A stretch of DNA of 64,000 nucleotides, taken from assembly GCA_030704615.1 (NCBI GenBank), contig CM060731.1, positions 46,128,001 to 46,192,000 on the forward strand. Direction: 5' to 3'. This document shows positions 27,476 through 61,640 of the stretch, piece after piece. This DNA is from Takakia lepidozioides. Its lineage: Eukaryota > Plantae > Bryophyta. The notes below the pieces were generated by a model, which was not told where the DNA came from, made no database searches, and was given only the letters and a program-made list of their open reading frames with translations. The position numbers were made by a program, and so were the translations under genes. Positions within the stretch are counted from its first letter, which is position 1; each line of letters begins with the position of its first letter.

Positions 27476-27784
27476 AGAATTGCATTGTGGGTTGTGGGTT
27501 AACGTCGTGGGCTGTGCATCAAGGCTGCAGGCAGACACCCACACTCTCCCAGCGACCAATTCTGCGACATGTCTTGGGCTGGACATGTGGGCTGTGTTCT
27601 TAGTAGGGGGTATGAGGAGGGAATGAGCAGTGGGGGAGCTGAGAGGCGCTGATCCGGGTCGCCTGATGAGCTAATTCTTCCCAATGCCAGCGGCATTGAC
27701 AAGTTTGGCAAGATCTGGAGGTTTCAGGCTTTTGGAGCAGTTTGTAAAGGAAGAATTGTATTGGGTTGGAGAGGGGGAGGCATT

Positions 27785-28245
27785 ATGTGGCACCTCAAGC
27801 AGTTTATTGCCAAAGAGCAAGGGACCTTGGAGGGGAAGTCGGTGGACGTCGGATCCCTGAAGCTGCAAGTGCGAAGCATTATAGCTCAGGGTGGATTCTC
27901 CTGTGTGTATCTAGCCAGAGATGCACAATCAGGGAGAAACTATGCATTGAGGCACATTATATGTAATGATATGAAGTCCGTGGATCTGGTGAAAAAAGAA
28001 GTTGCAGTGATGAAGGTGTTGCGAGGCCATCCAAACATCGTGACGCTGCATGCCCAGGTCGTTTATGATATGGGACGGACCAAAGAATGCTTCCTCGTCA
28101 TGGATTTATGTGACAAGATGCTTGTAAGTGTGCTGGACGACAGAGGGGTTGACTTCCTCGAGGAGAAACAGTTGCTTCTCATGTTCCGGGAAATTTGTAA
28201 TGTTGTGTATGCTATGCATTGTCAATCGCCTCCAATAGCTCACAG
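27785..28245 (+). pseudogene. Isolated first exon of a NAK-family (AAK1/BIKE-like) Ser/Thr kinase
   Basis: MWHLKQF..IAQGGFSCVYLA..YALRH..GHPNIVTL..AMHCQSPPIAHR, ending at AG|GT. No downstream kinase exons. The catalytic Lys position reads R. Confidence 0.85.
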
Positions 28246-28516
28246 GTTGACGACTCACCTTTTCGCTGTTCTGCATTGTTGCTTCTCTGTTGGGTTGGTG
28301 GCAATGGATCACTGCGGGTGATGTCTTGCAGAAAAATCGTCAAACAAATCCATGACCAATCTTCCCTTTCAATTCAGTTGTTTGCTGAACACCGTCAGCT
28401 ACGAAGAGTTTTCTGAAGTTGAATAGCTGTAATTGACGATGGCAGGAACAAAAGCAAAAAAAAATGGTGCTAGCTTGTTTGACCGCCACATCTCTTTTTC
28501 CTCTGCAGAGTTTGCC

Positions 28517-29947: not shown

Positions 29948-30297
29948 TGTCAAGTTAAATAAACACGGTGTGAAACTAACTAGAATAAAGCTAGTTATTT
30001 GTATTTAACACTTGGATTTAGTTCAAGTGTTAAGTCAGGTGTCAAGTTTAGCTTGACACCTGAACCATCTTATATTCACGAGAGCGTCAGTCGTGCGGCT
30101 CATCTCTCTCGAGTTGAGCCTGCACGACCGAGCTCCTTCACTGCTTAGATTCTAAGTGTGCTTATGAAGGGAGAATAGGATGTTGTGGGGTGGAGTCCCC
30201 ATAGCTTGCGGTGCCCCTGGCTCGACTCGTAGTTTTAATGAGTGATTGTGTTGTATTGAGTGTTTTTGTGTGTCATAGTGTGATTTTAGTTTCAATC
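29948..30297 (+). repeat. Terminal repeat A1 (350 bp) with tandem hairpins
   Basis: Roughly 96% identical by eye to the reverse complement of 45459-45808. Stems aactag/ctagtt, ttaacacttg/caagtgttaa, tcaggtgtcaag/cttgacacctga, gtcgtgc/gcacgac. Confidence 0.9.
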
Positions 30298-30411
30298 ACT
30301 CGAGAGAGATGACTTGCATTTGTGAGTGCCAGAGGTGAGTTTAGTTTTAGCACTTGTGGGTTTTTGTTTGAAAGTGAGAGAAGAAAATTATGGTGGTTTG
30401 TAGATTATGTT

Positions 30412-33400
30412 TGTCGCGGCCCTTTGCCTTGAGGGCAGGGGGGTCGGGACACATGAGGGGCTGCCCCTGTGGTGGGGGCAGTGGCAGCGATAGGTACGGG
30501 GGGCTGAAGCACCCTTGAGTGCCCAAAGCACTCAAGGAGGCGGAGGTGCTCACTAGGTGGAGCCCCGCACACCGGGATGCGGTAGGGGTGGCTTCACAAA
30601 GGGGTGGTGGTAGCTTAGCGGGACTTAGTGGGGGTGGCATAGGACTCACCATGGGGGCGGAGACCTCGTGGTGGGAGTCGTGGGGAGTCTTGGGACTCAT
30701 CACGGTCCATAGGGGCCGTGGTGAGTGGGCCAAGACTCACCGCGACTCATCACCGGGAGTCGAGGGTTTTCGTGGTGGTTCGCCATAAAATGGCATGGCT
30801 GGTTGTGAAACCCCCGCGGACAGCTACAGAAGTATATATAGGGAGTAGTAACCCCGAGAACGGTGCAAGCCCGTTGGTGACCAAAAACTAGTGAGTAAGC
30901 GAGCGAGCCGGAAAGCGACCAAAGAGTGGGGAGCTGTTCCGGACTGCCAACTACCAAAGGGAATTCCTGCTGGGCCCAAATCGGTGGAGGGTTCTTTGGG
31001 AGATCAAAGGGGGACCGTTATGCCCCGGTGAGCAGCCGAAGCTCCAAGTTGGCCCGTCGGCCAGGTTGGGAGTTAGGCGCGCGCATCAAGCGAGTAACTA
31101 TGACTTGAAGGGGAGCTTACCGAAGTGAGGTGCGCGACACTTGGTATCAGAGCTTAGAGTTCAGTAAGTGATCGTCCTTGGGAATGGCCTCATCATGGGG
31201 TCGGGCAAGCCAAAGCGAAAGCGGAACGGCCCAAAAGATGATGATCCTGGTGAGCCCGATGGGGGCGACGTTCACCGATGCGGCCGTTTGAGGAAGCGAT
31301 GCATGTTTTCCGAAAAGAGGCCGCTCAAGAGCGGGAGGAATCCGAGGATTCGGAGCCCGAGGAATCCCTGAAGCTGCCGACCGACCAACAGATGTCTCCC
31401 ATGCCGGCAAGCCTTTTGGGAAGGGTTGTTGGCGCAGTTTTGGCGGGATGCTGAAAGACGTGTTGCAGGCGGCTAATGCCACTTCCACTAAGGCAATTTA
31501 GGTGAAGCCTAACAAAACCCGGCACCTTCGAGGGCATCCAAAATCGGAAGGCACTCCACTGGCTCCTGGAGCTAGAGCAGTACTTCCGGGCTGCCAAGTT
31601 GAGTGACGAGGACGGGTGGAAGTGGCTCCCACCTATTTGAGAGGCTATGCTCAACAATGTGGCAGAAACGCCTTCACGACCGAGGTCCAAGCCCGGAAAC
31701 CTTGAACTGGAGTGGGTTCAAGGAATTGATGAAGAGACAGTTTGTGCCCCTCAATGCGTCCTGGCTTGCCCGGGACAAGATGAGGAATTTGAAGCAAACA
31801 GATGACATTCGGGGATGTCCAGGCTTTCAATGTGCTTTTGCTTGAAGTCGCGGACATGGCAGAACCGAAATGGTCTTCAACTTTGTGGCGGGACTGGCCC
31901 ATGGGCCAGGCGGAAGTTGGAGGAGAAGCCACCTAAGACTTTGAACGAGGCAATTGAGAGGGCTGAATTTTCTCTCGGATATCCCTAGGGGTGAAAGACA
32001 AGGTCGTACGGAGCTGAACCACAAGAAGACCCGGCGGGAAGGTGACTCCTTCCGACCGGAAAAGAAGTGGGATAGGCCACGCGGCGACAATGGCACGTGG
32101 AAATCGAAGGGAGGGCCATCACAAGTCAAGGCGGCACCCGGTGCTTCGAAAGGAAAAGCGGGTGGAGCGGCCTATGGCGGATAGAAGGCAACCTTTGATG
32201 GAGTGTGTTTCAATGCGGGGAGCCCGGGCACATGGCCAAGAAGTGCACGAAGCCCCGGCAATTGAACATGACTCGGGCGACCACAGAGCTGTCGGAAGAT
32301 ACCATCAGTCGCTTGGTGGAAGCGGTGGTCGCCAGGACTTGCAAGGTAGGCAAATTTTCTTGTGAGTTGTATCAGAAAACTGGCGCCCGCCTTAACGTAA
32401 AGGGAGTCAGTTATTGTTCGTGGATGGGATATATCCGGAACTACGTGTCGTTGTTGGTGGACACAGGAGCGTCGCACTCCTTCTGACACCCCGGCAACGG
32501 CAACAAAATTTGGACTTCCCGACAAGTGACGTGGGGGCCTCTATTGAGGTGCGTTCTGCCAAGGAAACCACAATTGGCGACGATGTTGGCGTTTGATGTT
32601 CCTCTTCAACTGGGGAGTTGGGAGGGACGTGAGAACTTCACCATCTGCGAGATCGATGGAGTGGATCTCATTTTGGGGATGACCTTTTTGGAGCAAATCC
32701 GGAGCGTCATAGATGGCCGCAAGAGAGTAGTCACGCTGCCATGTGGGAATGGTGGCGAGTCTTACGAGTGTCGGAAATGCCCAAACCCGTGGGAGGGCGA
32801 TAAACCTTCTGTCAGCAAGGGAGTGGGCCGTGGAGGAGGCACATGAGCCCCAGTTTTTGCTCTACATTAGAGAAGTGAAGGGAGAAGGCGATGGGGAGCC
32901 GAGCCCAGATTGGATCAAGGGATTTTGGAGAAATACCAGGATGTGATGCCAGAGGATTTACCAAGCGGTTTGCCACCGCGAAGAGGAGTTGACCACAAGA
33001 TTGAGGTGATACCGGGATCGGAACCGCCTGCCAAGGCGCCCTACCGTTGAGCCACAGAGAGTTGGTCGAGCTGAAGACTCAGCTCAAAGATCTAATGTCA
33101 AAGGGTACATCCGGTCGAGTAAGTCACCTTACGGAGCCCCGCGCTATTTGCAGATAAAAAGGATGGGACGCTGCGGATGTGTGTCGATTACAGGGCTCTG
33201 AATAAGGTGACTATAAAAAACCGGTACCCTTTGCCAAGGATCGACGACCTCTTCGATCGGTTGGCAGGAGCGAGTATTTCATTTCATTTTCAGCCAGATC
33301 ACTTGCGCTCCGGCTATCATCAAATTCGGGTGGCGGAAGGAGATGAGGAGAAGACCGCGTGCAGGACAAGGTATGGTTCATATGAGTTCTTGGTGATGCC

Positions 33401-36400
33401 TTTTTGGGCTCACCAATGCACCAGCGACATTTAGCACGCTGATGAACAGCCTTTTTTCAGGAGTGTTTGATGACTTTGTGATCGTGTACATCGACGACAT
33501 CTGGTGTACTCGAAAACAAAGGAGGAGCACCTAGAACACCTGAAAAGGGTGTTTCCAAAAATTGCGAGAAGGAAGTTGTATGCCAAAGCTGTTCAAAGTG
33601 CAAATTCGGGTCACAAAGTGGAGTTCTTGGGGCATGTGATTACACAGGATGGGATCAGAATGGATGACAGGAAGGTGAGGGCAATCTTGGACTGGGAGCC
33701 TCTGACTATCGGTCCCGGGAGTGCGATCCTTCCTAGGACTCGCCTCCTATTACCGGAAGTATGTGAGAAATTTCACCAAGATCGCGGGGCCGCTGTCGGA
33801 CCTTCTGTGTAAATCCAAAGTCTGGGCATGGAACACCTTTTGTGGCCAAGCTTTTGCTAATTGAAGCAGCGGGATGGCGGAAGCTCCAGTCTTGAAAATC
33901 CCGGAGTTCGATCGTCCGTTCGAGATACATACAGATGTTCGGACTTCGCGATTGGGGGTGTACTGATGCAAGATAGACGTCCAGTGGCTTACGAAAGTAA
34001 GAAACTGAATGAAGTGGAGCGACGGTGGCCGACGCACGAGAAAGAGATGAAGGCGGTGGTGCACTGTCTTGAGCTTTGGCGCCACTATGTTGGTTCCAAC
34101 CCAGTGAAGGTGTTCACGGACAATGTCACGGTGAAGTATTTTGCCACACAGCCCAAGTTGTCCCCAAAACAACTTAGGTGGCAAGATACTTTGGCGGTGT
34201 TCAACGTGGATATCCAATACAAACCGGGACGAGACAACGTGGTGGCCGATGCTTTAAGTAGAAAGCAGCAGCTCTTGTTGGTGTACAAGGGCGAGACGGC
34301 GCTCCAAAGGAAGATCCGGAAGGCTTGCCGGAACGATGAACTGGCGAAGTCCGTGATGCAGGACTTGAGGATGGGGGTTAAATCGCAGTTCCACTTGCAA
34401 AATGGGTTGCTCCGGTATAAGCAAAAGCGTCTCTACGTGCCGAGGGAGGGATCAGAGATAGCCTCTTGAGAGAATGCCATGATAGCCCGCTTGCGGGCCA
34501 CGGCGGAGCCAAGCGCACTGCGGCACTCTTGAAGAAAGAGTATTTCTGGCCCAAACTGAGGGAGGAGGCAGAGGAGTATGTCAAGACATGCACCACATGC
34601 CAACAAACCGGAGCGAGTACAAAAAGCAAGTGGGGCTGTTACAACCCTTGCCGATTCCAGAGGGGACTTGGGAAAGCGTCTCGATGGATTTCATGACTGC
34701 TATGCCGCTGTCAAAAGGATTCGATGCAATCATGGTGGTGGTGGATAGGTTCAGTAAAATGGGTCATTTCATCCCCACCAAGGAGACGGCAATGGCGCAG
34801 GAAACAGGGCGACTTTACTTCGCCCACGTCTTAAAGCATCATGGAGTCCCGAAGGATATTGTCTCGGACCGCGATCCAAAGTTTACGAGTAAATTTTGGA
34901 GGGCACTTTGGAAGAAAATGGGGACGAGGCTGAAGATGAGCACCGCCTTCCGACCTACGACCGACGGCCAAACAGAAAGAGTGAATTCTGTAGTGAAGCA
35001 GATCTTGCGGAATTACGTGTCGGCAGACCAAAACGACTGGGTGGAACACTTAGACGCGGCATAGTTCTGTTATAATAACCCGCAACGGGAGTTTCCCCTT
35101 TCGTATTGGTCTATGGAAAAGCACCTCTGGTGCCGACAAGTTGGGCCGCCCAGGACGTTGAGGAACCGGCAGTAGCGGCGGTACTGGAAGAACGCGAGCG
35201 TTTGTTGAAGCTCGCAAAGTACAACATTGCCAAAGCTAGGAAACGGTATGAAAGGCAGGCGAATCGGAAGCGGAGGGAAGTGAAGTTTGAGGCAGGCACG
35301 GAGGTCTGGTTGAACATCAAGAATTTCCGACTACCTCCGGAAGTGAGTCCAAAGTTCGTACCTCCGTATGCGGGACCCTTTCGCATCCGGAAGGTTATGA
35401 ATGAGGATGTGTATGAATTGGAGCTGCCGGCAAACAGCAAGGTGCATCCAGTATTCCACGTCTCCCTTTTGAAGCCTTACTTCAAAGATGAAGCGCGTCC
35501 GAATCGGCATCAAGTGTTGTGTCCGCCACCTGTGCTGTTGGATCATGAAATGAACCTGAGTACGAGGTGGAGGCAGTACTTAAGTCGAGGAGGTTCAAGA
35601 ACCGAGAAACGGAGTATCTCGTCAAATGGAAGGGCTATCATCATGTGGAGGCATCTTGGTGCGTGCCTCAGAAATGGGAAACGCATCCGAGGCGGTTGCA
35701 GTTTTTGAAGGGCGACCTCAAAAGCGGAAGAAGCGTTGATGGGGACATCAACCTTGGAGCGTGGGGGAGGAAATGCATGCTTAGCCCGGCTTAGCTAGCT
35801 CAGGAATCCGATTGCAAAAACTTGTATTGTACAAAAATTTGTTATAAAGGAAATGGGTTCCAAATGTTGTGCGTCCTATTTTGTGTTGGAATGGTGATGC
35901 ATGGTGTGGTTTGGCTAGTGTGTAGAATGCATGCTAGCTTACAAAAGTGGGAGAGTAAATTGGGTTAATCGTGTGTTTGCGCAGTGCCGAAATCGGGTGA
36001 CTCCCATCCTAGGGGCAAGGAAACATGCGCCTTCTTTGGGAGTTCACGTGCTAGTGCGCACCTGGCGCGTGCACGTACTATAACTGCGCTACCGAGGTGG
36101 TTGCCTTGTAGTGCGGGCTAACGCGGAAGCTACGTGCTTCCATTCACGTACTACAATCGTGTAGCCTCGGGACGAAGTCGGAGTGCGGCTTCGACGTGTT
36201 CCCGTACCCAGGCCAGCATTCCAAGACGGACCCAATTGTAGTGATTGGGGCGCACGGTTGGTTCAAGGTTATCTTCCTAGTCAAAGGGGTTCAAGGTGAA
36301 CCCTTGCGCAAGGTGATGCCAAAGGCGGCATCATGAGCGATCACAAGCAATGTTGTTGCAGTAAGGCGATTCGATCCTCGGGGAGGATCATTCCTTGGCC

Positions 36401-37369
36401 TTGAAGTAGGCCAAGAAGAGTGCACTGGGAGGAGCTTGAGAGGCTCCACCCCTAGCCGGGACTTGGAGAAAGTCGGCCAAACTAGCTAGTGGAGAGTAGA
36501 GTCAAGTGTGGGGTTTGGTTCTTTGCCTTGGGACGCCATGGTACGGAAACAAACTCCTTGATGTGGGACGCCACAACTTGGATGTTCGTTTCTACAAAAT
36601 GGACAAGTCGATGAGGACATCGACTCCTTGTTGGTAGGGGTGTGTGTCGCGGCCCTTTGCCTTGAGGGCAGGGGGTCGGGACACATGAGGGGCTGCCCCT
36701 GTGGTGGGGGCAGTGGCAGCGATAGGTACGGGGGGCTGAAGCACCCTTGAGTGCCCAAAGCACTCAAGGAGGCGGAGGTGCTCACTAGGTGGAGCCCCGC
36801 ACACCGGGATGCGGTGGGGTGGCTTCACAAGGGGTGGTGGTAGCTTAGCGGGACTTAGTGGGGGTGGATAGGACTCACCATGGGGGCGGAGACCTTGTGG
36901 TGGGAGTCGTGGGGAGTCTTGGGACTCATCACGGTCCATAGGGGCCGTGGTGAGTGGGCCAAGACTCACCGCAACTCATCACCGGGAGTCGAGGGTTTTC
37001 GTGGTGGTTCGCCATAAAATGGCATGGCTGGTTGTGAAACCCCCGCGGACAGCTACAGAAGTATATATAGGGAGTAGTAACCCCGAGAACGGTGCAAGCC
37101 CGTTGGTGACCAAAAACTAGTGAGTAAGCGAGCGAGCCGGAAAGCGACCAAAGAGTGGGGAGCTGTTCCGGACTGCCAACTACCAAAGGGAATTCCCGCT
37201 GGGCCCAAATCGGTGGAGGGTTCTTTGGGAGATCAAAGGGGGACCGTTATGCCCCGGTGAGCAGCCGAAGCTCCAAGTTGGCCCGGCGGCCAGGTTGGGA
37301 GTTAGGCGCGCGCATCAAAGCGAGTAACTATGACTTGAAGGGGAGCTTACCGAAGTGAGGTGCGCGACA
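30412..37369 (+). mobile_element. Full-length chromodomain Ty3/Gypsy (Galadriel-like); gag-PR-RT-RH-INT-chromo, heavily frameshifted
   Basis: LTRs 30412-31139 and 36645-37369 nearly identical; TSD atgtt; PBS tggtatcagagc. Motifs [44 protein letters not shown]. Confidence 0.95.
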
Positions 37370-43759: not shown

Positions 43760-45370
43760 TTCATTTCTTTGCATCCTCAATGCACCCACATTGGGCATAC
43801 ATGTCCACCAGGGCAGAGTTCATAATGACATCTGGTACTATTCTCTTTGACAATGTCACCATAGACCTCTTTTGACCTTTTCCAGGGCTGCCAGGCTTGC
43901 ACAAGCATTGCAATCACACAAAAACATGATGTGGTTGGGCTTCACCCATTCCCCCATAATTTGATCATAGGTCTCCAAATCCACCATCCCACGTCTCTGC
44001 TATGCATACCCTGCGATGCTTGTGAGTGTGCACTTGCTTTCCAACTTCCAGACCTTTCTTGGCGTGAATCCACATCAGAGTTTGTTGGCACTAGGAAAGG
44101 GTTGAGACTGAGCTGCTCAACTACTCCCTGGTCTTACTGGGTTTACATAGTGTGCCAAGCACAACATCTGGTGCCAAAGCCTCCATCCAGTGCCCCTGCT
44201 GTGCATACCCTGCAAGCATCGAGTTCCACGACACCACATCTCGTTCAGCCATACTATTCCCTTCATACATGTCCACGAGGGTATTGTTCATAATGACATG
44301 TGGTGCAATTGCAGCTTTGACAATGTCGCCATGGACCTCTTTGCCATTCTCCAGAGCTGCCAGGCTTGCACACGCATTGCAAACTATCAAAGGTTCACTC
44401 AAACAGTAACTTGCAGAAATCAACATGAAAATTTAAGGACGATTTCGATAAGAGGGGAAAACATGATGAAATGTTTTGAAGGCACTTCATCTGCCTAGAC
44501 AATCTTCTCAGCTTAGCATGGATTTCCTTAATTTTGGGATGCAACCTGTCATCTACAGCGAAGGTGTGCATCCTGTTGCAAATCTCAATGGAGCAGCGAC
44601 CTGGCTCTTTTCTAACCCCTCTGACCTTCATCATTCTTCTCACCAACTTGTGCTTTTGCGATGCAACCATGCACCCCTTCGCTCATTTCCAGGGCTGCCA
44701 AGCTTGCAAACACACAGATGTGATGTGGTCGGGCTTCATCCCTTCCCCTATCATTTGCTCATAGGTCTCCAAAGCCTCCATCCAACGCCCCTGCTGTGCA
44801 TCGCGTTCCACGACACCACATTTCATTCAGCGATATAGTTGAACACTGCCTTCGCATCCTCGATGCTCCCACATTTGGCATACATGTCCACGAGGGCATT
44901 GTTCAGAATAACATCGGGTACAATTCCAGCTTTGACGATGTCACCATGGACCTCTTTCCCCTTTTCCAGGGCTCCCAAGCTTACACACACATTGCAAACA
45001 CAAACTAAGGTGATGTGGTTGGGCTTCACCCCTTCGCAGAGTACACAGAAGTTCCTTGCTTTGCATCCTCAATGCACCCACATTTGGCATACATGTCGAC
45101 CAGGGCAGAGTTCAGAATGACATCTGGTACAATCACAGCTTTGACAATGTCACCATGGACCTCTTTACCCTTTTTCAGGGCTGTCAGGCTTGCACAAGCA
45201 TTGGAATCACAAACAAACGTGATGTGGATGGGCTTCACCCCTTCCCCCATCAATTGATCATAGGTTTCCAAAGCCACCAACCCACGTCCCTGCTGTGCAT
45301 ACCCTGCAATCATAGCGTGCCACGACACCACATCTTGTTCAGCCATAGTGTTGAAAACTCCCTTTGCATC
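43760..45370 (-). pseudogene. Scrambled PLS-PPR array, right part (inverted continuation of 28517-29947), with E2/PG-box fragment
   Basis: DAKGVFNTMAEQDVVSW, repeated triplet pieces, and RGVRKEPGRCSIEI..DRLHPKIKEIHAKL at ~44480-44670. Confidence 0.9.
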
Positions 45371-45897
45371 TGTCGTGCGCATACGTATTGCTACACAACT
45401 ACATCGTTGTCCAAACTACACCACACATATATGGACAATAAAGTAGTCTGCCACAATAGATTGAAAACTAAAATCACACTGTTGACACAGAAACAGTCAA
45501 TACAACACAATCACTCATTAAAACTACGAGTCGAGCCAGGGGCACCCCAAGCTATGGGGACTCCACCCCACAACATCCTATTCTCCCTTCATAAGCACAC
45601 TTAGATTCTAAGCAGTGAAAGAGCTCGGTCGTGCAGGCTCAACTCGAGAGATATGAGCCGCACGACTGACGCTCTTGTGAAGATAAGATGGTTCAGGTGT
45701 CAAGCTAAACTTGACACCTGACTTAACACTTGAACTAAATCCAAGTGTTAAATACAAATAACTAGCTTTATTCTAGTTAGTTTCACACTGTGTTTATTTA
45801 ACTTGACAGCTGTCGTGCGTATACGTATCGCTACACAACTACATCGCTGTCCAAACTACACCACACATATAAGGACTATAAAGTAGTCTGCCACAAT
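45371..45897 (-). repeat. 3' terminal block B1-gc-A2-B2 of the split-repeat element
   Basis: B1 45811-45897 and B2 45371-45457 (87 bp, ~5 differences). A2 45459-45808. Spacer gc at 45809-45810. PPT-like G-run immediately upstream of B1 on the minus strand. Confidence 0.9.
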
Positions 45898-47176
45898 CGC
45901 CCCCCTAGCTGGTGGATAGGTCCCTCTAACTCCAGATAGCTACAAGATGTAATAGCCACAGTCGTACTAAGTCCTCTATCACTGTCCCTATTGTACTCAA
46001 ACTCTATAGACCAAGAGGCCGGGTACATGAGTAGCCCCATCGTTAGTCGCCGTCTTGCAATCTGTGAACTTGAGCTAGGATCTCGTGTGTTCAAGGTCTC
46101 CTAGTAGCTTGGGCTTGCATTTCTTGTTAGCCTTCCATGGTTGTATCCACTCCCACTATCCAATGCAATGCGGATATAACCAATCCCCATCAGGAACCAT
46201 CTCAAGAGGTGGAGTCAAACATCCCATATGCCAACCTCTAGAGCATTGATCACACACCAGCATGGTGGCTGCCCCTCTAGCAGACCCACACAACATGCAC
46301 CTCAAACTTGTAGGTACAACTGCCAGGTTTGGGTCAATCCTGCCATCGACATTCGGAAGGTGATATGACGCACAATTACGCACATGGTCCTTCCAAGTTA
46401 TGCCATCCCGACCCTCCAAGATCAAGACGCCTGAGGGCAATACCTCTCGAACCCTCAAAATAACACGTCCTGCAGTCACATCCAAGGTCGTAGGAGCAGT
46501 CTGCTGCAGATAAACCCTGGGGGGTGCACTCTTTATAAAATGTCCGTATAAACCCCCTATATACGGGTCCTTGGATCATTTATACCCCCTCTGTACATAC
46601 ATTTTGAAGATTATAAAACCCCCTCCTGTAAATATATAGAAATTTGTAATTTTTAAAAAGTACCCCTTATGTATGTATATTTCCCTTTTCAATAATTAAA
46701 AAATACCCTCAAATATGTATATGTATGTTTTTATATTATATCAAGTTTATTTATTTAAAATCGAATAAAATCTAATAAATTAATTTAAAAAATTGTTTGC
46801 CCTCAATAAAACTTGTTGTGGAATCTCACTTTGAACAATATTCAGATGCAGAGAGGAAAGGGACATTGTCAATGCCCGATGTGCAAGAGGCCTGAAGAAA
46901 GTTTCCATTTTCTGATATACAATCCTGGGTATTTTCATCAAAGAGTGATCCTCTTGAAGACCATCAAGACCTAGTCACTGCACCTCTGTTCATCAACTAG
47001 GACAGTTTCTAAACTTGTTCTACAGTTTCAACCTTTGCAAGGTCCAATTATGTTCAAAACCTACTGTTGAGAATTCCTCTCCAAAAGAGATTTCGTGCAC
47101 CTTTGCTGCCACTGTTGGAGTCCAACCTGAAGCTGATAGAGTTCAATACATTCAATTAGGTGACAAGCATTTCATT

Positions 47177-48660
47177 TCACCAATACTCCCCACAAGAACA
47201 AACACCATTTTGGAAGTGGTGACAGCGGTTTGCATCCCGTACAACAATCTCTTGCTTAGTTATCTTTGAGATGAATTTGGTGGCTGTGTGGCAATCACCA
47301 CACATCTGAAGATTCCTGGTGATCCTCAAAGACATCCCAGAGGGTGTGTTGATAAGCCCAAAAACAATGGCCAACTTCTCATTGTGGTGGCAAAGAGACG
47401 ATTCTTTAAGCTCTTCCTCAACATCATGCAATGCAAAGCCCGGGCTTCACTCCTTTGCACATCATTTGCTCATAGGTCTCCAAAGCCTCTATCTCGCGCC
47501 CTTGCTGTGCATATCCTGCAATCATCACACTCCACGACAGCACATCTCGTTCAGCCATACCGTTGAACACTCCCTTCATACATGTCCACGAGGGTATTGT
47601 TTAGAATGACATTTGATACAATTGCAAATCTGACAATGTCGCCATGGACCTCTTTGCCTTTTTCCAGAGCTGACAGGCTTGCACACGCATTGCAAATGTA
47701 CACAAATGTGATGTGGTCGGGCTTCACCCCTTCCCCCATCATTTGATCATAGGTCTCCAAAGCCTCCATATCACGTGCCTGCTGTGCATACCCTGCAAGC
47801 ATCGCACTCCACGACACCACATCTCGTTCAGCCATGGAAACTCCCTTCGCATCCTTAATGCCCACATTTGGCATATATGTCCACCAGGGGAGTGTTCAGA
47901 ATGACATCTGGTACAATTGCAGCTTTGACAATGTCACCATGGACCTCTTTCCCCTTTTCCAGAGCTCGCAGGCTTGGACACGCATTGCATCCTGCCAACA
48001 TTATATTCCACGTGATCAAAGATCGTTGAGGCATTCTGTTGAACACTTGGTGAGCATCAATGATGCTCCCGCACATAACATACAGGTTGACAAGGGTGTT
48101 GAGTAGAAAAACATTTGGCGTGAATCCACTTTGGATAATGTGAGTGTGCACCTGCTTTCCAGCTTCGAGACCTTCCATCTTGATGCACTTAAGCAAGAGA
48201 CAGACATACATATCTGAATCTGCTGAACTGCCTCCTTGGTTTAGAGTCTGTAGAGTTTCTGTCAGGCTGTCGCACAAAGTATCTTCACATGCCCAGAAGT
48301 GCCAGAAGAGGTATTGTGGACTCCCTCTCTTGATCCTCTTTCAGAAGTTGTGGTCATGGTTGAGGTGCCTGATTTTATCAACTGTGCCGCTGCAGCTGCT
48401 GCCTTTAGTTGACCATCTACCCATGCAGGTTTCTTGTAGCTACTGACCCCCACATGGAATCAAGGTAATCTGGAGCTTGAAGTCCAGCCACTCCCTCCGC
48501 ATCCTCAATGCTCCCACAATGGCATACATGTCCACAAGGGTATTGTTCATAATCACATCCGGTACAATTCCAGCTTTGGTGATGCAACCATGCACCTCTT
48601 TGCCCTTTTCCATGGCTGCAGGCTTGCACACGCACTGCAAACGCACACAAATGAATTCAA
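47177..48660 (-). pseudogene. PPR N-terminus, PLS pieces and DYW C-terminal part inside the TIR element
   Basis: MTTTSERGSREG N-terminus (as at 28517). LHDVEEE..HHNEKLAIVFG..CGDCHTATK..CSCGEYW at 47177-47431. Confidence 0.9.
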
Positions 48661-49076
48661 AGGTCAGATGGTGGGGTCAGCTACAACATATGTCCAACAC
48701 CAGATATCCTAAGTTAATCGACTCTATATCTTAAAACTACATGCTCTAGCTTAGGCTTGGATTTCATGGCTAATGGTTCCATCTCAAGACTTGATAACAG
48801 GGGTACGTTGAAGGTTGCAATGACCAAAAGTGCTTCTAATTGAGTCCCACATCAATTCAATCTCAAAGAAGTTCGTCCCTTGACTGGCTGGAGAGCGGTC
48901 TTAGACATTGGTGATTCAATGGGGCGCTCTAGGAAAACAACCAAGGGCAAGGACTTCAATTTGAGAGTTTCTAATCGGTTTGATGCTATGAATCCATGGG
49001 GTAACTGTCCCCCCTTTGCAGAACGGTTGGCCGTCTAGGAGCAATCACAAGCTACCTAGAACGACAAACAATTCAC

Positions 49077-50230
49077 ATGCAAAGGGCTGGCTTGCGGCTG
49101 GCCACTTTCAACTTCTCAGGGTTGACCAACCAAAGGAAACAACTCGAAGTGGGACAAGTTCTTCGGACTAATGATACTCATATCTGTGTTGGGCAAGAAA
49201 CATGGGAAACGGCGGATAAACTGGTTGGAGATGTCAATGGTTATAAATGGGCAGGTAAGATGTGTACTCTCAAGGCAGCCTCTGCCAAACGCAGTAAAAA
49301 AGGGGCTGGATTCTTTGTCCATGATTTCTTGTTTGACAATTGTGAAATTATCAACAAGGGTTTGAGGTACGAGCATAGTATCTGGCTAAAACTGAATCTG
49401 AAGGGCAGCTTGAGTACGAAGGACCTCTTTGTGGGTTGTGTTTACATGCCCATAGAGGGGACCCTTAGTGCTGACGCAGACAAAGCCTTCGAAGATGTAA
49501 AACTGGACTGTGCTTCGTTCCTTGCCAAAGGTCAGGTGGTGCTATTGGGTGACTTCAATGCCCGGGTGGGCAAAGGGCTCCATCAGGACGATATCACTAG
49601 GCCTTCTGGTGAGGACGAGCTGAATTCTAATGGCAGACGGTTAATTAACTGTCTGGAAGAGCTTCATCTTTTGACCTTGAATAACAGGACAAGAGGTGAC
49701 CAAGTGCATTGGACTCGTGAGAAATCCCAAACAGGGGAACGTTCCATTGTGGACTATATCATAATGGACAAAAATTTGTTCCCCCAGTGTGCCAATGTGT
49801 TGATCGACAGAACTGATATTGGTGCCTCTGACCACTTCCTGGTTTGGACTGAGATCAAAAGGTGTTTTCCCAACACCAGAGTGAAAGAGATTCTCAAGGA
49901 CCTGGACCTGGATCCGCAAGTCTTGACCCTGCTGGATAAATCCGACTTAGAGGCTGTAGTGTCCAAAGCCATGTCTGTTGCCATGAGATTGTCTGATGAA
50001 AATGAAGTTGGGCAGAAAACTTCCCTGAACTTGTTTCCAGTCAGTGACATGGGGGAGGACATCATGGATGACCTCAATGGTCCACCCACTCTCGGCACTA
50101 GACTGAAATTTAAACTCAGGGTAGGAAGCCTACCTTTGAACATCAAACAGAAGCAGAGAGGAAAGGGATAGTGCACTTCCCATTGTGTGGGCAATCTGAA
50201 GACAATATTCATTTTCTGATACACTGTCCC
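49077..50230 (+). pseudogene. LINE-derived APE endonuclease fused in frame to the LINE C-terminus, RT absent (RTE/RTEX-like)
   Basis: ATFNFSGL, GQETW, GCVYMP, LLGDFNARVG, NSNGRRL, SIVDYII, SDH, then RLKFKLRVGSLPL and a degenerate PLC..ED..HFLIHCP. Confidence 0.8.
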
Positions 50231-52244
50231 GGGTTCTCTCATTGATAACAGGTGTACGTTGAAGGTTGCAATGACCAAAAGTGCTTCTAATAGAGTCCCA
50301 CATCAATTCAATCTCAAAGAAGTTCGTCCCTTGACTGGCTGGAGAGTGGTCTTAGACATTGGTGATTCAATGGGGCGCTCTAGGAAGACAACCAAGGGCA
50401 AGGACTTCAACTGCAGGTGACCAAGTGCAGTGGACTCGTGAGAAATCCCAAACTGGGGAACGTTCCATTGTGGACTATATCATAATGGACAAAAATTTGT
50501 TCCCCCAGTGTGCCAATGTGTTGATTGACAGAACTGATATTGGTACCTCTGACCACTTCCTGGTTTGGACTGACTCAAAAGAGGACCTCTTGTGTGTGCC
50601 TACTTGTGTCTGTAGTCAGGTAAGGACGGATTGGTCAGTGAGAACCACCACGGTGCAGCTGAGCACGGCCTGCTAAGACCAAGCTGACTCTCCCAAGAAC
50701 CTTATAAACATCTGGAAGAATACCAAATCAGGTACTTATAGGAGGCAAGAGCCCGCAATAGCAGGATGGAAAAAATTCTTCACATCGTACCTTAAGAAAA
50801 CGCCACACCTTCCATTGCAGTTGTCCCACCATTGTCAATCTTCTAAAAACTCATACCAGGTCTGCTCAGTGCTGCAAATTCAGGGCCGACTCTAATGAGA
50901 GGGCAAGACAGGCTGAAAATAGGTCAAAGAAGAAGGTGCCCTCACCACATTGTTCTTGACCTTGTGTCATGACCCATGGAGGATTTGCCCTCCCATCAAC
51001 CCAAAAGGATCGCTTCCGTGTGCTGCTGGTGTCTGTAGTCAGGTAATGTCGGATTGGTCTTTGAGAAACCACCACAAAATGGCCTGCTAAGACCAAGCTC
51101 ACTCTCCCCTAAACCTTGTAAACATCAGGAAGAATACCATGCCCAGTGGAGAGGAGGGGAGAGGAGAGGAGGGAAAAGAGAAAGCCCGCGGAAGGGAAGG
51201 CGAACGCAGGAGAGGAGTGGAGAGGAGATAAGAGGAGGAGAGGGAAGGGGAGAAAGATCGCGGATAGAAAAAAAAAACAAACAAACAAACAAAAGGATGA
51301 TCCTGCGATTTGATCCCGTGGTGCATCGCGGCCTAAACACCGCTCTTACCACTACACTACCCCTTAAAACTCAACAACCCCCTCCTGTAAAATTATATTT
51401 AAGGTGTTTTAAACCCCCCCTCTGTATGTATAATGTTGTACATGGGGGGGTTTAAAATACCCCCTCCTGTGCACGCACGTGGCTGGTACATTTAATGAAG
51501 AGTGCACCCCCCAGGAGATAAACATAGTCACCACGGTTAAATCTCCGGATCCCAGGACGATAGCCCCCACCACGTATGGTAGCATACCTCAACGTATCAC
51601 GATGTTGTGCAATGGCAAGATTCTCGAAGCCATGGGCATGACTTTCTTGAACAACTCTGCACGCTGATCACATGCACGTGCCCACACGTCCAGATCATCA
51701 AGGTTAAGAACTGTAGCAGCTTCTCTACGAATGGATGTAGGCAAATCCGGCTCTCAGCCAAAGAGAAGAAAGTATGGTGAGAAAGAGGCAAGTGATGCTT
51801 ACTTGCTGAACCTGTAGCCCATGGCTAACCAGGGTAACTGAAGGTCCCAATCTCCTAGGTGTCCCTTCTGCAAGCCATACTTGCGCAAACCCCTCTTTAC
51901 AGTCTGAACAACCCTCTCTGCCAAGCCATCGGCCTTAGGATGATCCTGAGAAGTGGTGCGGTGGTCTACCAAGGCCTTGTCACACAAAGCCTGAAACTCC
52001 CCCAAGAACTCTCTCCCTTGGTCCGTGAGTACCTCAACTGGAGCACCGAATCGGCTAAGTACACAATCCAAGAATGCATATGCAGCTCCCTCACTAGCCT
52101 TATCAGGCAATGGAACCAACTCGATCCACTTGGAGAAGTGCTCCACCATCACCAACACGTACTTGTTGTGGCGCATGGTTAGGAGCAATGGCCCTGCGAA
52201 GTCAAGACTCCACCTGTAGCCCAATCCCATGATCGGATGAGCCT

Positions 52245-54872
52245 GATGACTCCGCGCCCTTTGCCTGAGCATGTACAGCAAGCGGCGTTCCCCTAACTCC
52301 CACAGAGCTCTCATCCAATCCCTGGCCATGACCCCCCCCCCCCACCCATACTAGTGCCCTGTAGCGCACTCATCCCCTCCATATTGGCCATGTTCTTCAT
52401 GAGGGCTTGCCAACCATGCTACTTGGCGTAGTCGTACTCTATTGGAGATGGCTTCCTCTCAAACGCGGTTTCCTACATATGCCAAAAATTAAAGTCAGTT
52501 CCTCACGATGATGGAGCGAGAAAGAAGACATAACAAAATACATAGGGAAGTATGACTTACAAATCGCAAGATAAAACCCTTGGATCCGGCAGGGCCCCAC
52601 TTGTGTGTGGATTCGTGCTTCTGAAAGCAACTGTTGTTGCTTCGCGTGCCTTCTCAAATTTGGCCTTGGGTGCCGCATCCTTCTCTCCTGCAATAAGTGC
52701 ATCCCACGATACCTATGCACCCCCCCCACAATTAGCGAATTACACACATACGTTGCATCGAATCTACCTGATTAATGCATATGCAACAAATGGAAGGTGA
52801 AATAATTCAAGGATTTGCCAACCTGTGAAACTCCAAAAGGTGGTTTGGGTTGGACCCCATTTGCCTTTGTCTTCCAAGCTTGCAAAAGTACAACTGTCAC
52901 ACCTTGTTCCATGTTTTGTCGTTTCCTTTCAAATGCATGTTTTTCTTTGTTGTTTGTTTCTTTTTTATTTTATTTTGGGGGGTTATTCGTCTTCAGGAGG
53001 CAGCAACATTCTTGGCCACATTGGTGCAATCCGGTGGGGTTGCCAATGAAGGAGGGCACGTGGTGTTCATGAAGGACCCGAACACCAAAGGTAAAAAGAA
53101 GAGGCCTCGACCTCCCGAGGTCCCTTTTCCCATCAATAAAAGGGCTGCCGAGGAGAGAGAGAGAAGGGAAAGAGAGGAGAGAGTGGAAGTAGCGGGGAAG
53201 GGGAAAGACATAGTGACGGAGAAGGGGAAGGAAAAGAAGAAGAAGAAGAAGAGGTCCCATGAAGACGAAGTGGTGATTGTGCATGCGGGGGAGGCCAGTG
53301 GGGTAACAAAGGTGGAGGGGAAGGAGGTTACAAAGCAGGGAGAGGGTGGGTCGAAGAAGAAGAAATTCCGGGGGATAGAGAACGTGGAGTTGGCAAAGAT
53401 TGTTGTGCCACCGGTGGAGGTCAATAAGCATGGTGACCCCTGCTTTGCGTTTTAGGTGGCTATGAAGAAGCCAGCCTTCAAACTCGCATTGTTGTGGTTC
53501 CCTCTACACATTGAGTGGGCTGATCAGCACTATGGCCAAAAGCGGGCGTATGCCCGTGAGTTACACCGCCGGTTTCCGGGCAATTGGAGTGAGACAATGG
53601 TGATGGAGATGGTGGGGCGGAACTTGAAGGACAAGGGGTACCGTGCCAGAGAGAGAATTCCGACTCGGCCTCGGTGTCACCCAATGTGGCTTGACCTTGG
53701 GCCTTGGCAAGTGCGCCTTTGTTGCGGAGGAAGGGGTCTCTATAGGGGTGACATCCAAAAGTTGTCCAAACCGGGCCCCCGAACGGGTGATGCGCTTGCC
53801 AAGGTACATTTCACCCGTCTTGGTGGTCGGGGGTGTGCTCAACTGAGCGTCCGGACCAGCAACAACCTCCCGAATATGAGAGGTGGCTGAGCCGGCCACT
53901 GGCGAATCCAAGATGGGGAGAAGAGGGGGGTACTAACCTAAGGGGGCAGATGAGCCCTCTGGCTGCGGTTGCCGACGGGGCTGGTACACCGTGAGACGCC
54001 AGCCCCCGTCACACATGCCGGCAGAGCAAACGGGTTCTCCGCCCTTTTCTTGGGGCAGGGGACTTCTTCTCTTTCCCCATAAACCTGACACCTGTCATGC
54101 AAACCCAAAAGTTAGCCTCACCTGGAAACAATCTCAACATTCCAGATCCGCGGAAAGAGACGCGCGAAGTCTTGGACTTTGTGGGGATGGCTATAAGATT
54201 TTTCATGCATGTCCATGTGATAAAACCCTATACTACGGAGATGATTCGCGTCTGACAAAGTGTCCAAAGTGCAAGAAAGACCAATATCGGGATGATGTCC
54301 AAGGGGGAAAAAGTACCACACAAGGTATAAGCGCCATTTCCCCTCACATGGAAACTATTTTCTTTAATCTTCTCAATGCATATAAAGTGTATTCCACAAA
54401 GTTTAGGGTTTAGAGAGTAGTACTCATGCAAGATCTGATTGTGGCTTTGGAAGGAGTGAGTAATATTAGCGACGTTTGGTTTGATCATTATTTTCCTAAT
54501 GAGGGAGAGGGTGCATGAAGGGAAAGACATAAGGGTGTTGTATTATGTGTGCTAATGGAATGATAACATGTGGGGGACGTGGGGTATTTTTCATCCTAGA
54601 AAATGCATTACTTTCCGATCATCCCGCGATTGAAGGCACATCCAAGGCCGGTTACTAGGCGCCCTCGACAAGGAGCGGGCCGCCGGAATATTCCTTCACA
54701 AGATTTTGCCCGCGGAATTGCAGCCTCTAAGTTCATTCCAACAGTGGCTCAAGACTTCAGTTTATGATGCCGTTGCTCAAGGTGAGGTGGTTTCAGATAT
54801 GGTGCAAGACCTTGCAAGGGGCCCCTCTCAATTCGCGACCTCATATACGGCGGTTTGGGATCACGGTCGTTA
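52245..54872 (+). mobile_element. Heavily deleted CACTA (En/Spm) remnant with TnpA-like and TnpD fragments
   Basis: YKIFHACPCDKTLYYG..CPKC, HYFPIIPRLK and FQQWLK..LARGP. TnpA-like ELHRRFPGNWSE..VGRNLKDKGYR. Confidence 0.7.
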
Positions 54873-55454: not shown

Positions 55455-56155
55455 CGTTCTTGGGAGAGTCAGCTTGGTCTTAGCAAGCGTTTCAATCTCT
55501 GACTACTCAGCTACGCCGTAGTGGTTCAATCTCACAGACCAATCCGATATTACCTGACTACAGACACAAGCAGCACACACAAGAGGTCATCGGTCAAATC
55601 CTCCATGGGTCAGGACAGGTCAAGGACAATGTGGTAGGGCACCTTCTTCTTCAACCTATTTCAGCCTGTGTTGCCCTCTCATCAGACTCGGCCGCAAGAT
55701 GCATATTGAATTCTGTAAGTTAGGTCGTTGGGTAGATCTGTGGTGGTTTGGAGTGACTTTGGCAAGTTACTGCCAGTGTGGCAGCAGAGAAGTATCCAAA
55801 AACATATAATAGAGGTGAGAAGAAGCTTTGGGGTGAACACTTTCCGACCCCAATGGTGGGACAATGGAGACAAAAAGGCGAATGTCTGTTGGACTACAGA
55901 GAGAAGCAGATGCATTTCAGATTGTGATAAGTAGGGTTGGGGTGTTTTGGGGAAGAACTCCACACCAGTATGGTTGGGGTGTTTGCTAGTATAATTGTAG
56001 GCTGTCAGAGGCATGGATAGCTGAAGGAGCAGGGATAGAGTGTGGGTCCAGATTCATCCAAGAGGGCTGGATTTCAAGCTCCACATTACCTATGATTCCC
56101 TGTGGAAGGATAGTTACAAGAAACCTACATGGGTAGATGGTCAACTAGAAGCAGC
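55455..56155 (+). repeat. Recurrent cargo module, copy inside the CACTA element
   Basis: Colinear with ~26895-27440, plus a ~150-bp extra segment (55925-56080) whose end matches the inverted copy near 48470-48490. Confidence 0.85.
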
Positions 56156-56295
56156 ATGTTGTACTATATGTCATTACTGTACTATATGTCATTCCAGAGA
56201 CTGTCATTGTTGGTCCATGTGTTTTACAACAATGCTATCAATATAAGACTTCTGGTTCGCATTGGAAGCTCAATCCCTGTAAGTTCATTGTGTGT

Positions 56296-57499: not shown

Positions 57500-60400
57500 C
57501 TAGCATATATAATCATCATCATCCTCATCTATGTCTGGGTCACTACATGTATCACTGTCTTCATCACAGACTTGATCTTGTCCAAGGGTTGGCTGAACAT
57601 CATCACCACGTATACGGAGTGTTCGGAGGTACAAGGAGGCCACCTGCTCTGGAGTAACCAGTACCGCTCGGCTGCATGTTGGGCCATCAGTAACCAGAGT
57701 CTCATCTAGTCTTTGTGGGGCTAACAATCCTTCCACTTCCGCCACATCATCATTATCAATTGATATGTCACAGACCACTCTACGTGCTCGGGGGCTCTTC
57801 TCCAGGACGACTTTCCACCCCGGCTCCTTCACACAATCAGAAAAAAACACTTGATCAACCTGGCCAGGAACACAAAAGGTTGCTCAGAAGGTGGAAGCAT
57901 ACGGTTAAAATTGACAAGTGTGAAGCCAGCATCATCCTGCTTCATTGACATAGGTTGACGACCACGCGACTCGCCCGTACCCACGAACACAAAAACACTA
58001 TAGGTTGTGTTTGGCCATAGTCAATTTGCAAAATCTCCCTTATAAGACCTACATATCTTGTAGGTTCTTCCATGTCATTGCCTGAATTGTTGGTAATGGG
58101 CTGGTGCTGGAAAACAGTTGAGACTCCACAATCAAAAGACACCATACTTGTTGTGTTCATGCTGGGGGATGTAACCCTGTAATGGTTACCATACGCTGTC
58201 ATACTCTTGAATGACAGGGCAGTAAATGATGGAGGCCTTGAAAGATCCAGTAATTCCTCACGTGTTGTAGGATCAAGCCCATCTGATTGAATTGAGAGAT
58301 GATCCCGTACACCTTGAGGGAGCCAAACAGCAAATGGAGGACAAGGATGCAAATCAGGAGGGTACTGAATTGCCGTGGGATTGCTCATGCCTTCCAGCCC
58401 TTGCTCCTCACAAAACAAGCGTCGTCTGGCTTCTATCCGTGTGGACTCTGCTTCATATATCCTATCACAATCCGAGGGTCAGCCAAGAGATTGACAGAGG
58501 TGGCGTGGGAGATTTGAAAAGACGCCATATGCCAACTAATGATAAATGACTAAAACTTGGAAATTTGAATGTCAATGAAGTAGATTTCTTACCCCAACAT
58601 GACTGACAGACGAGGATGGTTCTGAATGATGTACTCATGTACAATATCACACAGGTCATTAATTTTCGGGCTTTAGAACTTCCTTCCACAACTTCACGTT
58701 CCACAGATTCTGCCTCATCTGCATCCCACACCCTTCATACACTTCCATCAAATCCTGCCATATACTCTGTGCAAAAACCCAATGCTTCTTCAAATTGGTA
58801 TCCTTCTGCCATGCTCCCCTCGGGCCTTGCCATGTTTCTTACGTAGCCCTTCATATCTTTCATTGCCCGCTCCATGGGGTACATCCAACGAGATGCTATG
58901 GGCCCGCATAAGTACAACTCTCAACCAGATGTGTCATCACATCAAAAAATGATGGTGGGAACTCTTTCTCTATAAGACACAGAGTGAGAACTGCTTCAGT
59001 TCTCAATTCCTCATACTCTACAGGATTCACCACTTTTGCACACAACTTCTTAAATACACGACATGCTCGCAAATGGCCCTTCGAGGACCACTTGCCATGA
59101 GCCCACGGATAGCAAGCGGTATAATTTGCTGCATGAGCACATGATAGTCATGTGATTTCATGCCAGACAACTTCTTCTTCACCACATGCTTTTTGAAAGC
59201 TGATGCGTAGCCTGTTGGCACTTTCAAGTTCTGCACAATCTCCAGAAAGACTTGTAACTCAGCCTCAGTGAGGACATAAGGGGCAGGAGGCATAATTAAC
59301 GTATCTGCTCTGTCAGGATCACATTGTAGCCACAATTCCGGGCGCATCCCAAGTACCTCCAAATCACGGCGAACTTTCAATGTGTCTTTCTCACCAAAGA
59401 TAGTTTTAATAATATTTTCAGCCAAGTTCTTCTCGCAATGCATTGCGTCAAACGTGTGGCGGATGAGGAGACCCTACAAAATGAACACATAAGCTATTGA
59501 GCATTTACTCATCACAATTTAAACAGAAAACGCAAAAATGTACACAGCCAATTTAAAGGCCATGAAGGAATTACCTCCCAATAAGGTAAGACATATAAAA
59601 TTGACAATCGCTTAACTCCATGAGTTTTTGCTGGGTCTGTCCTGCTATCTGGCGTCCCTCCGTTTTCCACCCATGCAGTGCGAGCTGTTGCAAGCTCCTT
59701 GATTTGTGTTCCAGTCTGCGTTTTTGGAGGAGTTCCATGCTTAGTAGCGCCATTGAACATTCTTGGATATTCTTCGATATACCTTCTATACGGATGATTG
59801 CGGGCCAAAAATCTACGGTGGCCTAGGAAAACAATTTTTCTACATGTGTGTAACTGCTGTGAAGTCACCCCGGGTCCACAAGCTGGACAACCAGCATAAC
59901 CTTTCGTCACTTGACCTAGAGCAAGCCATATGCAGGGTAGTCATGGATTGACCACATCAACACTGCCCTCAGTGCGAATTCGCGTTGACCACGAGGACGG
60001 GAAACATCATGAGCTGCAATCCCTCTCCATAGTTCCAGTAGCTCTTCCACTAGGGGCATCAGGTAAACATCTACGTTGTCCGAGGTAACAGACTCCTTAC
60101 CAGGAATCAGTAGCGCTAACATGACAAAGAACTTTTTGGTCATTAACCACGGAGGCAGATTGTAATTGACCAAGAGAACGGGCCATGTGCTCCAACTTGT
60201 GGATTGAGCTCCGTAGGGATTTACACCGTCTAAGGCCAATCCAAATCGCAGAGATCGTGGCTCTGCAGCAAAATCCTCAAATGTGGTGTCAATGTGTCTC
60301 CATGCTTTGCTATCAGCTAGATGTCGAACCAACCCATCCTGGCTCTTATGTCTGTCGTGCCATGTCATGAGGTTAGCGATCGATTTACATCGGTACATAC

Positions 60401-61640
60401 GTTTCAACCTTGGAATGACAGGGAAGTGTCGCAATACTTTCTTGGGCACACTTCCACGACCTGGAATGTAACGGGAACTGCGGCACACTGGGCAAATGTC
60501 TACATTCTCATACTCCCCATGGAAGAGTACACAACCACGCTCACAGGCATGAATCATGGTGTACTGCAATCCCATCTTGGCAATCATGGTTTTTGCTTCA
60601 TAGTGAGTTTTCGGCAATGAATTCTCTTTAGGCAAAAAACTCTTACGCAACAATCCCAGAAGCTCATCCACAAATGCATTGGTGCACTTGTGGGTAGTGC
60701 ATGCGTTCAGCAACGTCAAAGTTGCTTGCACCGGCTGATGGAGCACCCTTCAAAAAGTGGACATTGCGACTGTCGGAAGAGTTTATCATACTCGGGATCA
60801 ACGTGCAGGTGAGCATTCTCATCAAATTCATTGTCTCCGGAATCGTCGAGATCATCGTCATGATCAGCAAATGTGTGATCGGTTCCACCATGAATGGGGT
60901 CCTCTCTGTTTGCATCTGCAAAGAGAAACGCTTCCTGCAATGCACGCTGCATTTCTACCTCCAATCCACCACTCTCATCTGCGTTCTCTGTGACATTGGG
61001 CTCCCGCTGTGCCGCAGGGCCTTCGTCTTCGAATATTCACATCCCTGCATCCCAATAGTCATCTTGTGAGTGGACCAACAACGATGTGACACTTGTTCAT
61101 ATTATGACATAGGAGGCACGGTGACGTTGCAGTGATGCAGTCATATTTACGTATGTATCTTATGAATATACACCCAATCAAAACACGACATTTGTAACCA
61201 TTGAAGTCATAGTTGCAGTCACTTACTTAGTCATATATGACTACATGACTACACATGACCAATGAAAACACGACATGTGCATTAATTAAAGTGATAACGG
61301 AAGTGGCGTAGTCATAGTCACGTCTGTATCTTATGACTTCTTGACTACAATCACCCAACGAAATGTCGACATGTGGAGAAGAGGATCGTTGCATTCAAAA
61401 TTCAAACTAAAGTGTTGAAGGGAAAGTGACGATCTTACCGGAAGAGAACAGCGTCGGAGAAGAGGATCCCTCCCGTGTATCATGTAATGATTCCTCACTG
61501 TTTCCAACAACAGTATTTTTCCTCCATGACACTCATCGCAGTTGCATAGCATTTTTGTATGCCCATTCCTTGTGGCAAATTCGCCATAGACGGTCATCTA
61601 TTCTACGCCTACGCATCCGGTCGCCACCTGCACTGTACAT
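57500..61640 (-). pseudogene. CACTA transposase TnpD, intron-containing, frameshifted
   Basis: CNCDEC..VRNHYMIHG, IHACERGCVLF, HLADSKAWRHID, ALDGVNPY, WSIHDYPAY, MHCEKN, GMKSHDYH, WMYPMER, PEGSMAEGY, PGWKVVL. Confidence 0.93.

Follow-up and report, generated by a model that had tools for sequence, protein, structure and literature searches.

A likely Pack-type, hAT-like DNA transposon with a decayed PPR-DYW gene copy in its interior, inserted in a retrotransposon integrase gene of the moss Takakia lepidozioides

Some early-diverging land plants have thousands of PPR-DYW genes. With regard to the way in which pentatricopeptide repeat (PPR) genes multiply, their expansion is ascribed to dispersed duplication through retroposition in section 6 of PMC13386178 and to retroposition in O'Toole et al. 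(2008), as the latter is cited in PMC3814199; PMC13386178 gives 2,016 PPR genes for Takakia lepidozioides, the only moss that it analysed. Capture of host gene fragments by DNA transposons is known from the Pack-type members of the Mutator-like elements, the Pack-MULEs (Jiang et al., 2004, as summarised in PMC3814199 and PMC2869330). Here, we describe a 5,000-bp unit in a 64,000-nucleotide stretch of the T. lepidozioides genome (assembly GCA_030704615.1, contig CM060731.1, positions 46,128,001 to 46,192,000 of the forward strand; this whole stretch is termed the window, and all coordinates refer to it). The unit occupies positions 46516-51515, is bounded by an inverted repeat and an 8-bp direct duplication, and holds PPR-DYW sequence. 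It is probably, though by no means certainly, a non-autonomous cut-and-paste DNA transposon with a mosaic interior, likely a preloaded Pack-type element of hAT-like character. A literature search found no report that combines PPR-DYW sequence with DNA-transposon, Pack-type or hAT capture; Pack-type anatomy as such is already known, and it is the PPR-DYW cargo that is new relative to the literature searched.

The direct duplication at the two ends, AGATAAAC, is perfect and exactly 8 bp long, since the adjacent bases differ between the two sides both outward and inward. From position 46516 the left end reads CCTGGGGGGTGCACTCTT, and the exact reverse complement of this 18-mer terminates at 51515. 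A repeat finder paired 46516-46543 with 51488-51515 at 26 of 28 complementary positions, and past these 28 nt the ends of the element do not align as inverted repeats. A preliminary description of this DNA had proposed a 5000-bp unit with 18-bp terminal inverted repeats (TIRs) and a perfect 8-bp target site duplication (TSD), all of which is confirmed, the TIR reaching even further than had been stated. With up to three mismatches allowed, the 18-mer occurs at only two sites in the window, namely the two outer ends of the element (0.06 expected). When the whole window was scanned for perfect inverted repeats of at least 16 nt that lie 0.3-15 kb apart and adjoin a perfect 8-bp direct repeat, a single pair emerged, that of the 46516-51515 element, and none was obtained in 20 shuffles. 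That the structure is a chance inverted repeat with no mobile element involved has a probability close to nil: nothing beyond the single copy seen speaks for chance, and the pair is the sole one of its kind in the window and has no counterpart in shuffled sequence, an open reading frame (ORF) is interrupted exactly and restored upon removal, and a sequence motif is enriched at both ends. This explanation was rejected as refuted for practical purposes.

The interrupted frame belongs to a host gene: a retrotransposon integrase gene was already resident at the site, and the element landed as one unit in the part that codes for the integrase C-terminus. When the flanks were joined by script with one copy of the TSD kept, the element-free junction formed a single open frame, recorded as ...FNRGDYVYL followed by QQTAPTTLDVTAGRV... 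and as ...FNRGDYVYL followed by QQTAPTTL.... Such a pattern is characteristic of SH3-like tails in retroelement integrases. In domain scans of the individual flanks, the left one, 46159-46515(-), contributes a 119-codon ORF that ends in a PHD finger (E 1.8e-9), and the right one an integrase core (rve, E 1e-13, 51802-52350(-)). Insertion in an integrase gene had been suggested from the outset, and excision in silico bears it out by restoring the open integrase C-terminal/PHD frame. Elsewhere the host gene is decayed, with stops and frameshifts, and neither a reverse transcriptase (RT) nor an RNase H was found upstream of the integrase in the window. The PHD finger (PF00628, 46159-46380(-)) follows the host integrase at the place where chromoviruses carry a chromodomain.

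Next to the TIRs, both ends of the element carry three to four copies of a motif, A(A)CCCCCT(C)CTGTA, within about 150 bp. The string AACCCCCTCCTGTAAA recurs unchanged, at 46617 on the left and 51376 on the right, and six of the 15 occurrences of CCCCCT in the window fall in the two terminal 300-bp stretches, so that the subterminal repeats noted earlier are indeed arrays of the ACCCCCT(C)CTGTA type enriched at both ends. One inverted motif copy gives rise to an 18-nt hairpin in the right subterminal region (51403-51420/51444-51461). Two readings of this part of the element were rejected. Taken as miRNA-like (51400-51472), the hairpin matched MIR5148 with no more than 24 bits, where the threshold is 93.5, and the match is most likely due to chance; for a tRNA- or SINE-like stretch at 51300-51368 with a box-A-like string nothing was found by ARAGORN, also at relaxed settings, or by Rfam.

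The interior of the element contains a pseudogene on the reverse strand, with matches to PPR repeats at 47427-48340(-) and to DYW_deaminase (PF14432) at 47180-47446(-) (E 2.5e-39) and with a stop codon at 47177-47179(-). Its PPR N-terminus is 92.5% identical at the DNA level to a PPR N-terminus at 28515-28884, its PLS repeats carry a 32-residue deletion as well as repeated units, and at about position 47440 a repeat end, GVKP, is fused by a +2 frameshift to the DYW tail FALHDV.... N-terminus, PLS pieces and DYW C-terminus follow each other in gene order on one strand and are collinear with the intact PPR-DYW gene of the window at 11452-13689; measured against the 745-codon ORF of that gene, the equivalent of residues ~472-660 (the final repeats, E1/E2/E+ and the beginning of DYW) is missing. 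The intact gene is not the parent of the cargo because the DYW tails share only 66% protein identity. A functional gene would offer one open frame, a PLS array, E1/E2 and a complete DYW domain; the copy in the element shows at least three frame breaks and an 86-aa DYW remnant. No poly(A) tract follows the stop codon of the pseudogene. A protein-word search with the PPR N-terminal ORF (47858-48340(-)) returned 17 candidates, none of which scored, a result limited by the length window and word index of the search.

All components named in the preliminary description, i.e., a PPR N-terminus, PLS pieces, a DYW C-terminal part, a LINE endonuclease and a recurrent module, were found inside the element. 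Its further claim that RNA-editing-factor modules are being recombined here is not supported. Judged by its sequence, the PPR part looks like one decayed, collinear PPR-DYW gene copy with deletions, duplications and frame breaks, accompanied by a single stray PLS piece, and not like modules from different genes. The cargo is dead and does nothing now, so it gives no evidence of a path towards functional editing factors. The gene at 11452-13689(+) is a separate matter: amid pseudogene debris it forms an uninterrupted PPR-E-E+-DYW ORF that matches PPR, E_motif, Eplus_motif and DYW_deaminase, the last of these completely (E 8e-43), and may be a working editing-factor gene.

The PPR N-terminus adjoins the recurrent module, here called M, which has no Pfam domain and is present in four copies in the window. 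It is unsplit at 26834-27472 and 55456-56156; within the element it is split, the stray PLS piece and regions derived from a long interspersed nuclear element (LINE) lying between part a and two copies of part b. The element keeps an uninterrupted M-PPR junction, where the locus at 26-30 kb has a 1,042-bp kinase-bearing insert. That locus, 26834-29942(+), is a second M-plus-PPR locus in its own right; the insert that separates M from the PPR N-terminus there (27473-28514) holds a protein-kinase fragment (Pkinase, E 2.7e-13, 27653-28318), no TIR or TSD was seen at its borders, and its right border resembles a splice acceptor.

The longer LINE piece of the element has an EEP endonuclease (PF14529/PF03372) at 49005-50168(+) and no reverse-transcriptase domain, its ORF continuing into an ORF2-tail motif. 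The piece stems from the 5' side and lacks a 3' end as well as poly(A), so it differs from ordinary, 5'-truncated LINE insertions. The endonuclease ORF is open though the RT is missing and the surroundings are decayed, which suggests a young RT-less LINE derivative. In the second, internally deleted LINE copy the remaining segments are rejoined by a 4-nt filler, CTGC, at 50411-50414, and at its junction with M part b (50581) both partners share the microhomology CAAAAG. A fragment at 46810-46971, to which Pfam gives no match, is presumably a LINE ORF2 tail, going by its similarity to 50134-50242 and by the usual make-up of LINE ORF2 tails. The junctions examined showed microhomology or filler, and neither a poly(A) tail nor an internal copy of TIR or TSD was seen. 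The 26 interior ORFs scanned, among them all of at least 100 aa, gave no match to a transposase family, in agreement with the lack of a transposase stated earlier. A composite (macro-)transposon, in which two copies of a short element flank repeat-rich DNA and the outer ends are used jointly, would account for an interior that resembles ordinary local repeat debris more than selected gene fragments. It would call for inner ends, but there are no inner TIR copies or subterminal arrays, and the 18-mer is confined to the outer ends at up to three mismatches; this explanation was rejected as highly improbable. The features of the element and its flanks are collected in Table 1.

Table 1. Features of the 46516-51515 element and of the host gene on either side (window coordinates).
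Feature	Position	Strand	Remarks
Host, downstream of insertion: SH3-like C-terminal stretch of integrase, PHD finger	46159-46507	-	
TSD, left copy	46508-46515	none	AGATAAAC, 8 bp
TIR, left	46516-46543	+	28 nt, first 18 nt perfect
Left subterminal region, AT-rich	46544-46800	+	3-4 motif copies: 46550, 46584, 46615; weaker 46662
LINE ORF2 C-terminal zinc-knuckle-like fragment (presumed)	46810-46971	+	73% DNA identity to 50134-50242
DYW deaminase end	47177-47446	-	last 86 aa and stop; HxE (HNE) and CxDCH kept, ends EYW
PPR N-terminal region and PLS repeats, same pseudogene	47427-48359	-	internal deletions/duplications, at least 3 frame breaks
Module M, part a	48363-48489	-	adjoins PPR N-terminus upstream; also at 27366-27472 and 56065-56156
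Stray PLS piece, out of gene order	48489-48676	-	joined to M part a at 48489
LINE 5' region	48791-50242	+	open 388-codon endonuclease ORF at 49005-50168
Second LINE copy, internally deleted	50242-50581	+	segments 48791-48959 (98%) and 49694-49861 (96%)
Module M, part b, copy 1	50579-50757	-	80% to 26834-27028
Module M, part b, copy 2	50880-51139	-	77% to 26867-27140; 78% to copy 1
Purine-rich low-complexity run, then A-rich/(CAAA)n	51145-51300	+	
Right subterminal region	51355-51487	+	3-4 motif copies: 51376, 51411, 51459; weaker 51359
TIR, right	51488-51515	-	28 nt, pairs with left TIR
TSD, right copy	51516-51523	none	AGATAAAC, 8 bp
Host, upstream of insertion: decayed retrotransposon integrase	51524-52350	-	rve core 51802-52350, E 1e-13

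Taken as a Pack-type element, the unit combines TIRs and a TSD with the absence of transposase coding capacity and with host gene fragments inside (PPR/DYW by Pfam, collinear). To this extent the earlier designation as Pack-type stands, that is, for a TIR/TSD-bounded, transposase-less element with a host- and repeat-derived interior, while the reshuffling of modules that went with it is unsupported. A transposase provided in trans would read the TIRs and, probably, the subterminal motif, and its most likely source would be the hAT superfamily, to which TSD length (8 bp), short TIRs and subterminal repetition all point. Template switching or end joining, in the course of repairing double-strand breaks in an ancestral copy, may have assembled the mosaic, which, as we infer, would already have been aboard when the copy at 46516-51515 landed, in the manner of Pack-type transduplication. 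The best donor for the cargo in the window is 92.5% identical and none reaches 95%, compared with 93-100% for TIR, TSD and internal duplications, which argues against recent local copying. Likewise, duplication of M part b in place after insertion is unlikely because the two copies are 22% diverged, far more than TIR and TSD. The 5' origin of the LINE piece, at odds with a normal 5'-truncated insertion, also speaks for arrival of the cargo with the element, and the contiguity of M with the PPR N-terminus counts in favour of the Pack-type explanation.

The same interior could, in principle, have arisen at this site. In that case a short MITE-like element of ~0.66 kb (285 bp on the left and 375 bp on the right) would have landed and later been filled in place by ~4.3 kb of repair filler, and the mosaic of PPR-DYW, M and LINE sequence would never have transposed with these ends. 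The interior junctions are of the repair type and carry no dating relative to the insertion, PPR pieces, M and LINE scraps are strewn over the surrounding 64 kb, also at 1.1 kb to the left of the element, and no second copy was found in the window or in metagenome scans. In opposition to this stand the ceiling of 92.5% for any donor in the window, to be set against the 93-100% of TIR, TSD and internal duplications, and the fact that breaks made by a transposase fall at the ends of an element, so that an internal fill of 4.3 kb needs an unrelated break. We regard filling in place as unlikely, albeit far from negligible, and prefer the arrival of a preloaded Pack-type element.

Several observations weigh against the preferred interpretation of a preloaded, hAT-like Pack-type element. 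Only a single copy has been seen: when the two ends were compared with the window by short-word BLAST, no further copy of either emerged. In addition, a metagenome scan with the 27-mer of the TIR gave no match, and the five matches to the 18-mer each have unrelated adjoining sequence and are due to chance. That the cargo travelled together with the ends rests on inference, and later filler in a landed short element would give the same junctions. Beyond the element, the window contains M and PPR pieces (43767-45370, 28515-29942 and 11.8-13.7 kb) too; both are repeats common in this region and not cargo of a special kind. Nearly all copies of the subterminal motif share the plus-strand orientation at both ends, which is unusual. 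Lastly, the ends, CCTGGGGG with the terminal CCTGG, depart at positions 2-3 from the terminal consensus of hAT elements, (T/C)A(A/G)NG or [T/C]AGNGNNG, which is a consensus and not an absolute rule (PMC6027215); that the start is unlike usual hAT ends had already been remarked upon and is correct.

Assignment to a superfamily has to reconcile these ends with the remaining features. In favour of hAT are the 8-bp TSD on both sides and TIRs that, with 28 nt, fall within the range of ~8-30 bp and after which the similarity of the ends stops; no hAT transposase is present in the 64-kb window. Typical MULEs have TSDs of at least 9 bp and long TIRs. Measured by the usual values for this group, the element has a TSD of 8 bp in place of 9-11 bp and a TIR of 28 nt in place of at least 100 bp. 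Even so, an origin outside hAT deserves consideration, from a short-TIR Mutator-like element or another maker of 8-bp TSDs, with mobilization by the corresponding transposase and the Pack-type interpretation kept. The terminal CCTGG that misses the hAT consensus would fit such an origin, and MULEs, the classic gene-capturing DNA transposons of plants (compare PMC3814199), have TSDs of about 8-11 bp. Since the end similarity stops at 28 nt, unlike long MULE TIRs, and since hAT elements usually show just this combination of an exact 8-bp TSD, short TIRs and subterminal repeats, we view a non-hAT superfamily as possible but not the probable solution. The element is hAT-like by its TSD; membership in hAT is unproven, and we do not file it there.

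Were the element to belong to a CCTGG-ended multi-copy family with 8-bp TSDs that repeatedly carries and reshuffles PPR-DYW sequence, a proposition that we find doubtful, cut-and-paste transposons would have had a measurable share in the spread, and perhaps in the origin, of editing-factor genes in a PPR-rich non-seed plant. With a vehicle that acts at the DNA level, a gene could be copied along with the region upstream of it, and its repeats could be rearranged by repair events, from which new site specificities might plausibly arise. A single dead copy shows only that PPR-DYW sequence can sit in a transposon frame; it shows neither amplification nor function.

The remainder of the window is rich in other repeats. 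A 350-bp repeat occurs at 29948-30297 and 45459-45808 in copies that are inverted relative to each other and 96% identical; each adjoins an array of PPR fragments, one copy lying downstream and the other upstream, as if both were pieces of a PPR-X-PPR-X array. A young long terminal repeat (LTR) retrotransposon extends from 30411 to 37369; its LTRs, each of 730 bp, agree at 98.6%, its ends are TG...CA and its TSD, ATGTT, has 5 bp. A third LTR-like copy (94%) is located at 5938-6663. Remnants of a CACTA-type transposase are found at 57500-60746(-) (Transposase_21, E 9e-50, 59916-60743). The ORF at 53937-54410(+), Cys-rich, N-terminal-like and without Pfam match, is a CACTA-type remnant as well.

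When the element is compared with described systems, the Pack-MULEs of rice and Pack-CACTA elements come close, being bounded by TIRs and TSDs, free of a transposase, composed of host fragments joined at the DNA level and equipped with cargo that is usually non-functional. MULEs typically have TSDs of 9-11 bp and long TIRs, against 8 bp and 28 nt in the moss element, whose cargo amounts essentially to a single decayed gene copy, the region upstream of it and LINE scraps. With non-autonomous hAT elements of the Ac/Ds type it shares the TSD length (8 bp), short TIRs, the repetition of subterminal motifs and the existence of deletion/filler derivatives that need a transposase in trans; it differs by its CCTGG ends and by motif copies that have nearly all the same orientation at both ends. 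Mosaic cargo is also a trait of Helitron-type capture, but Helitrons have neither TIRs nor an 8-bp TSD. Finally, like retroposed PPR copies, the element presents a dispersed, intronless PPR-DYW copy among transposable elements; unlike these, the copy is broken, has no poly(A) after its stop and is set, together with an upstream module, in the frame of a DNA transposon.

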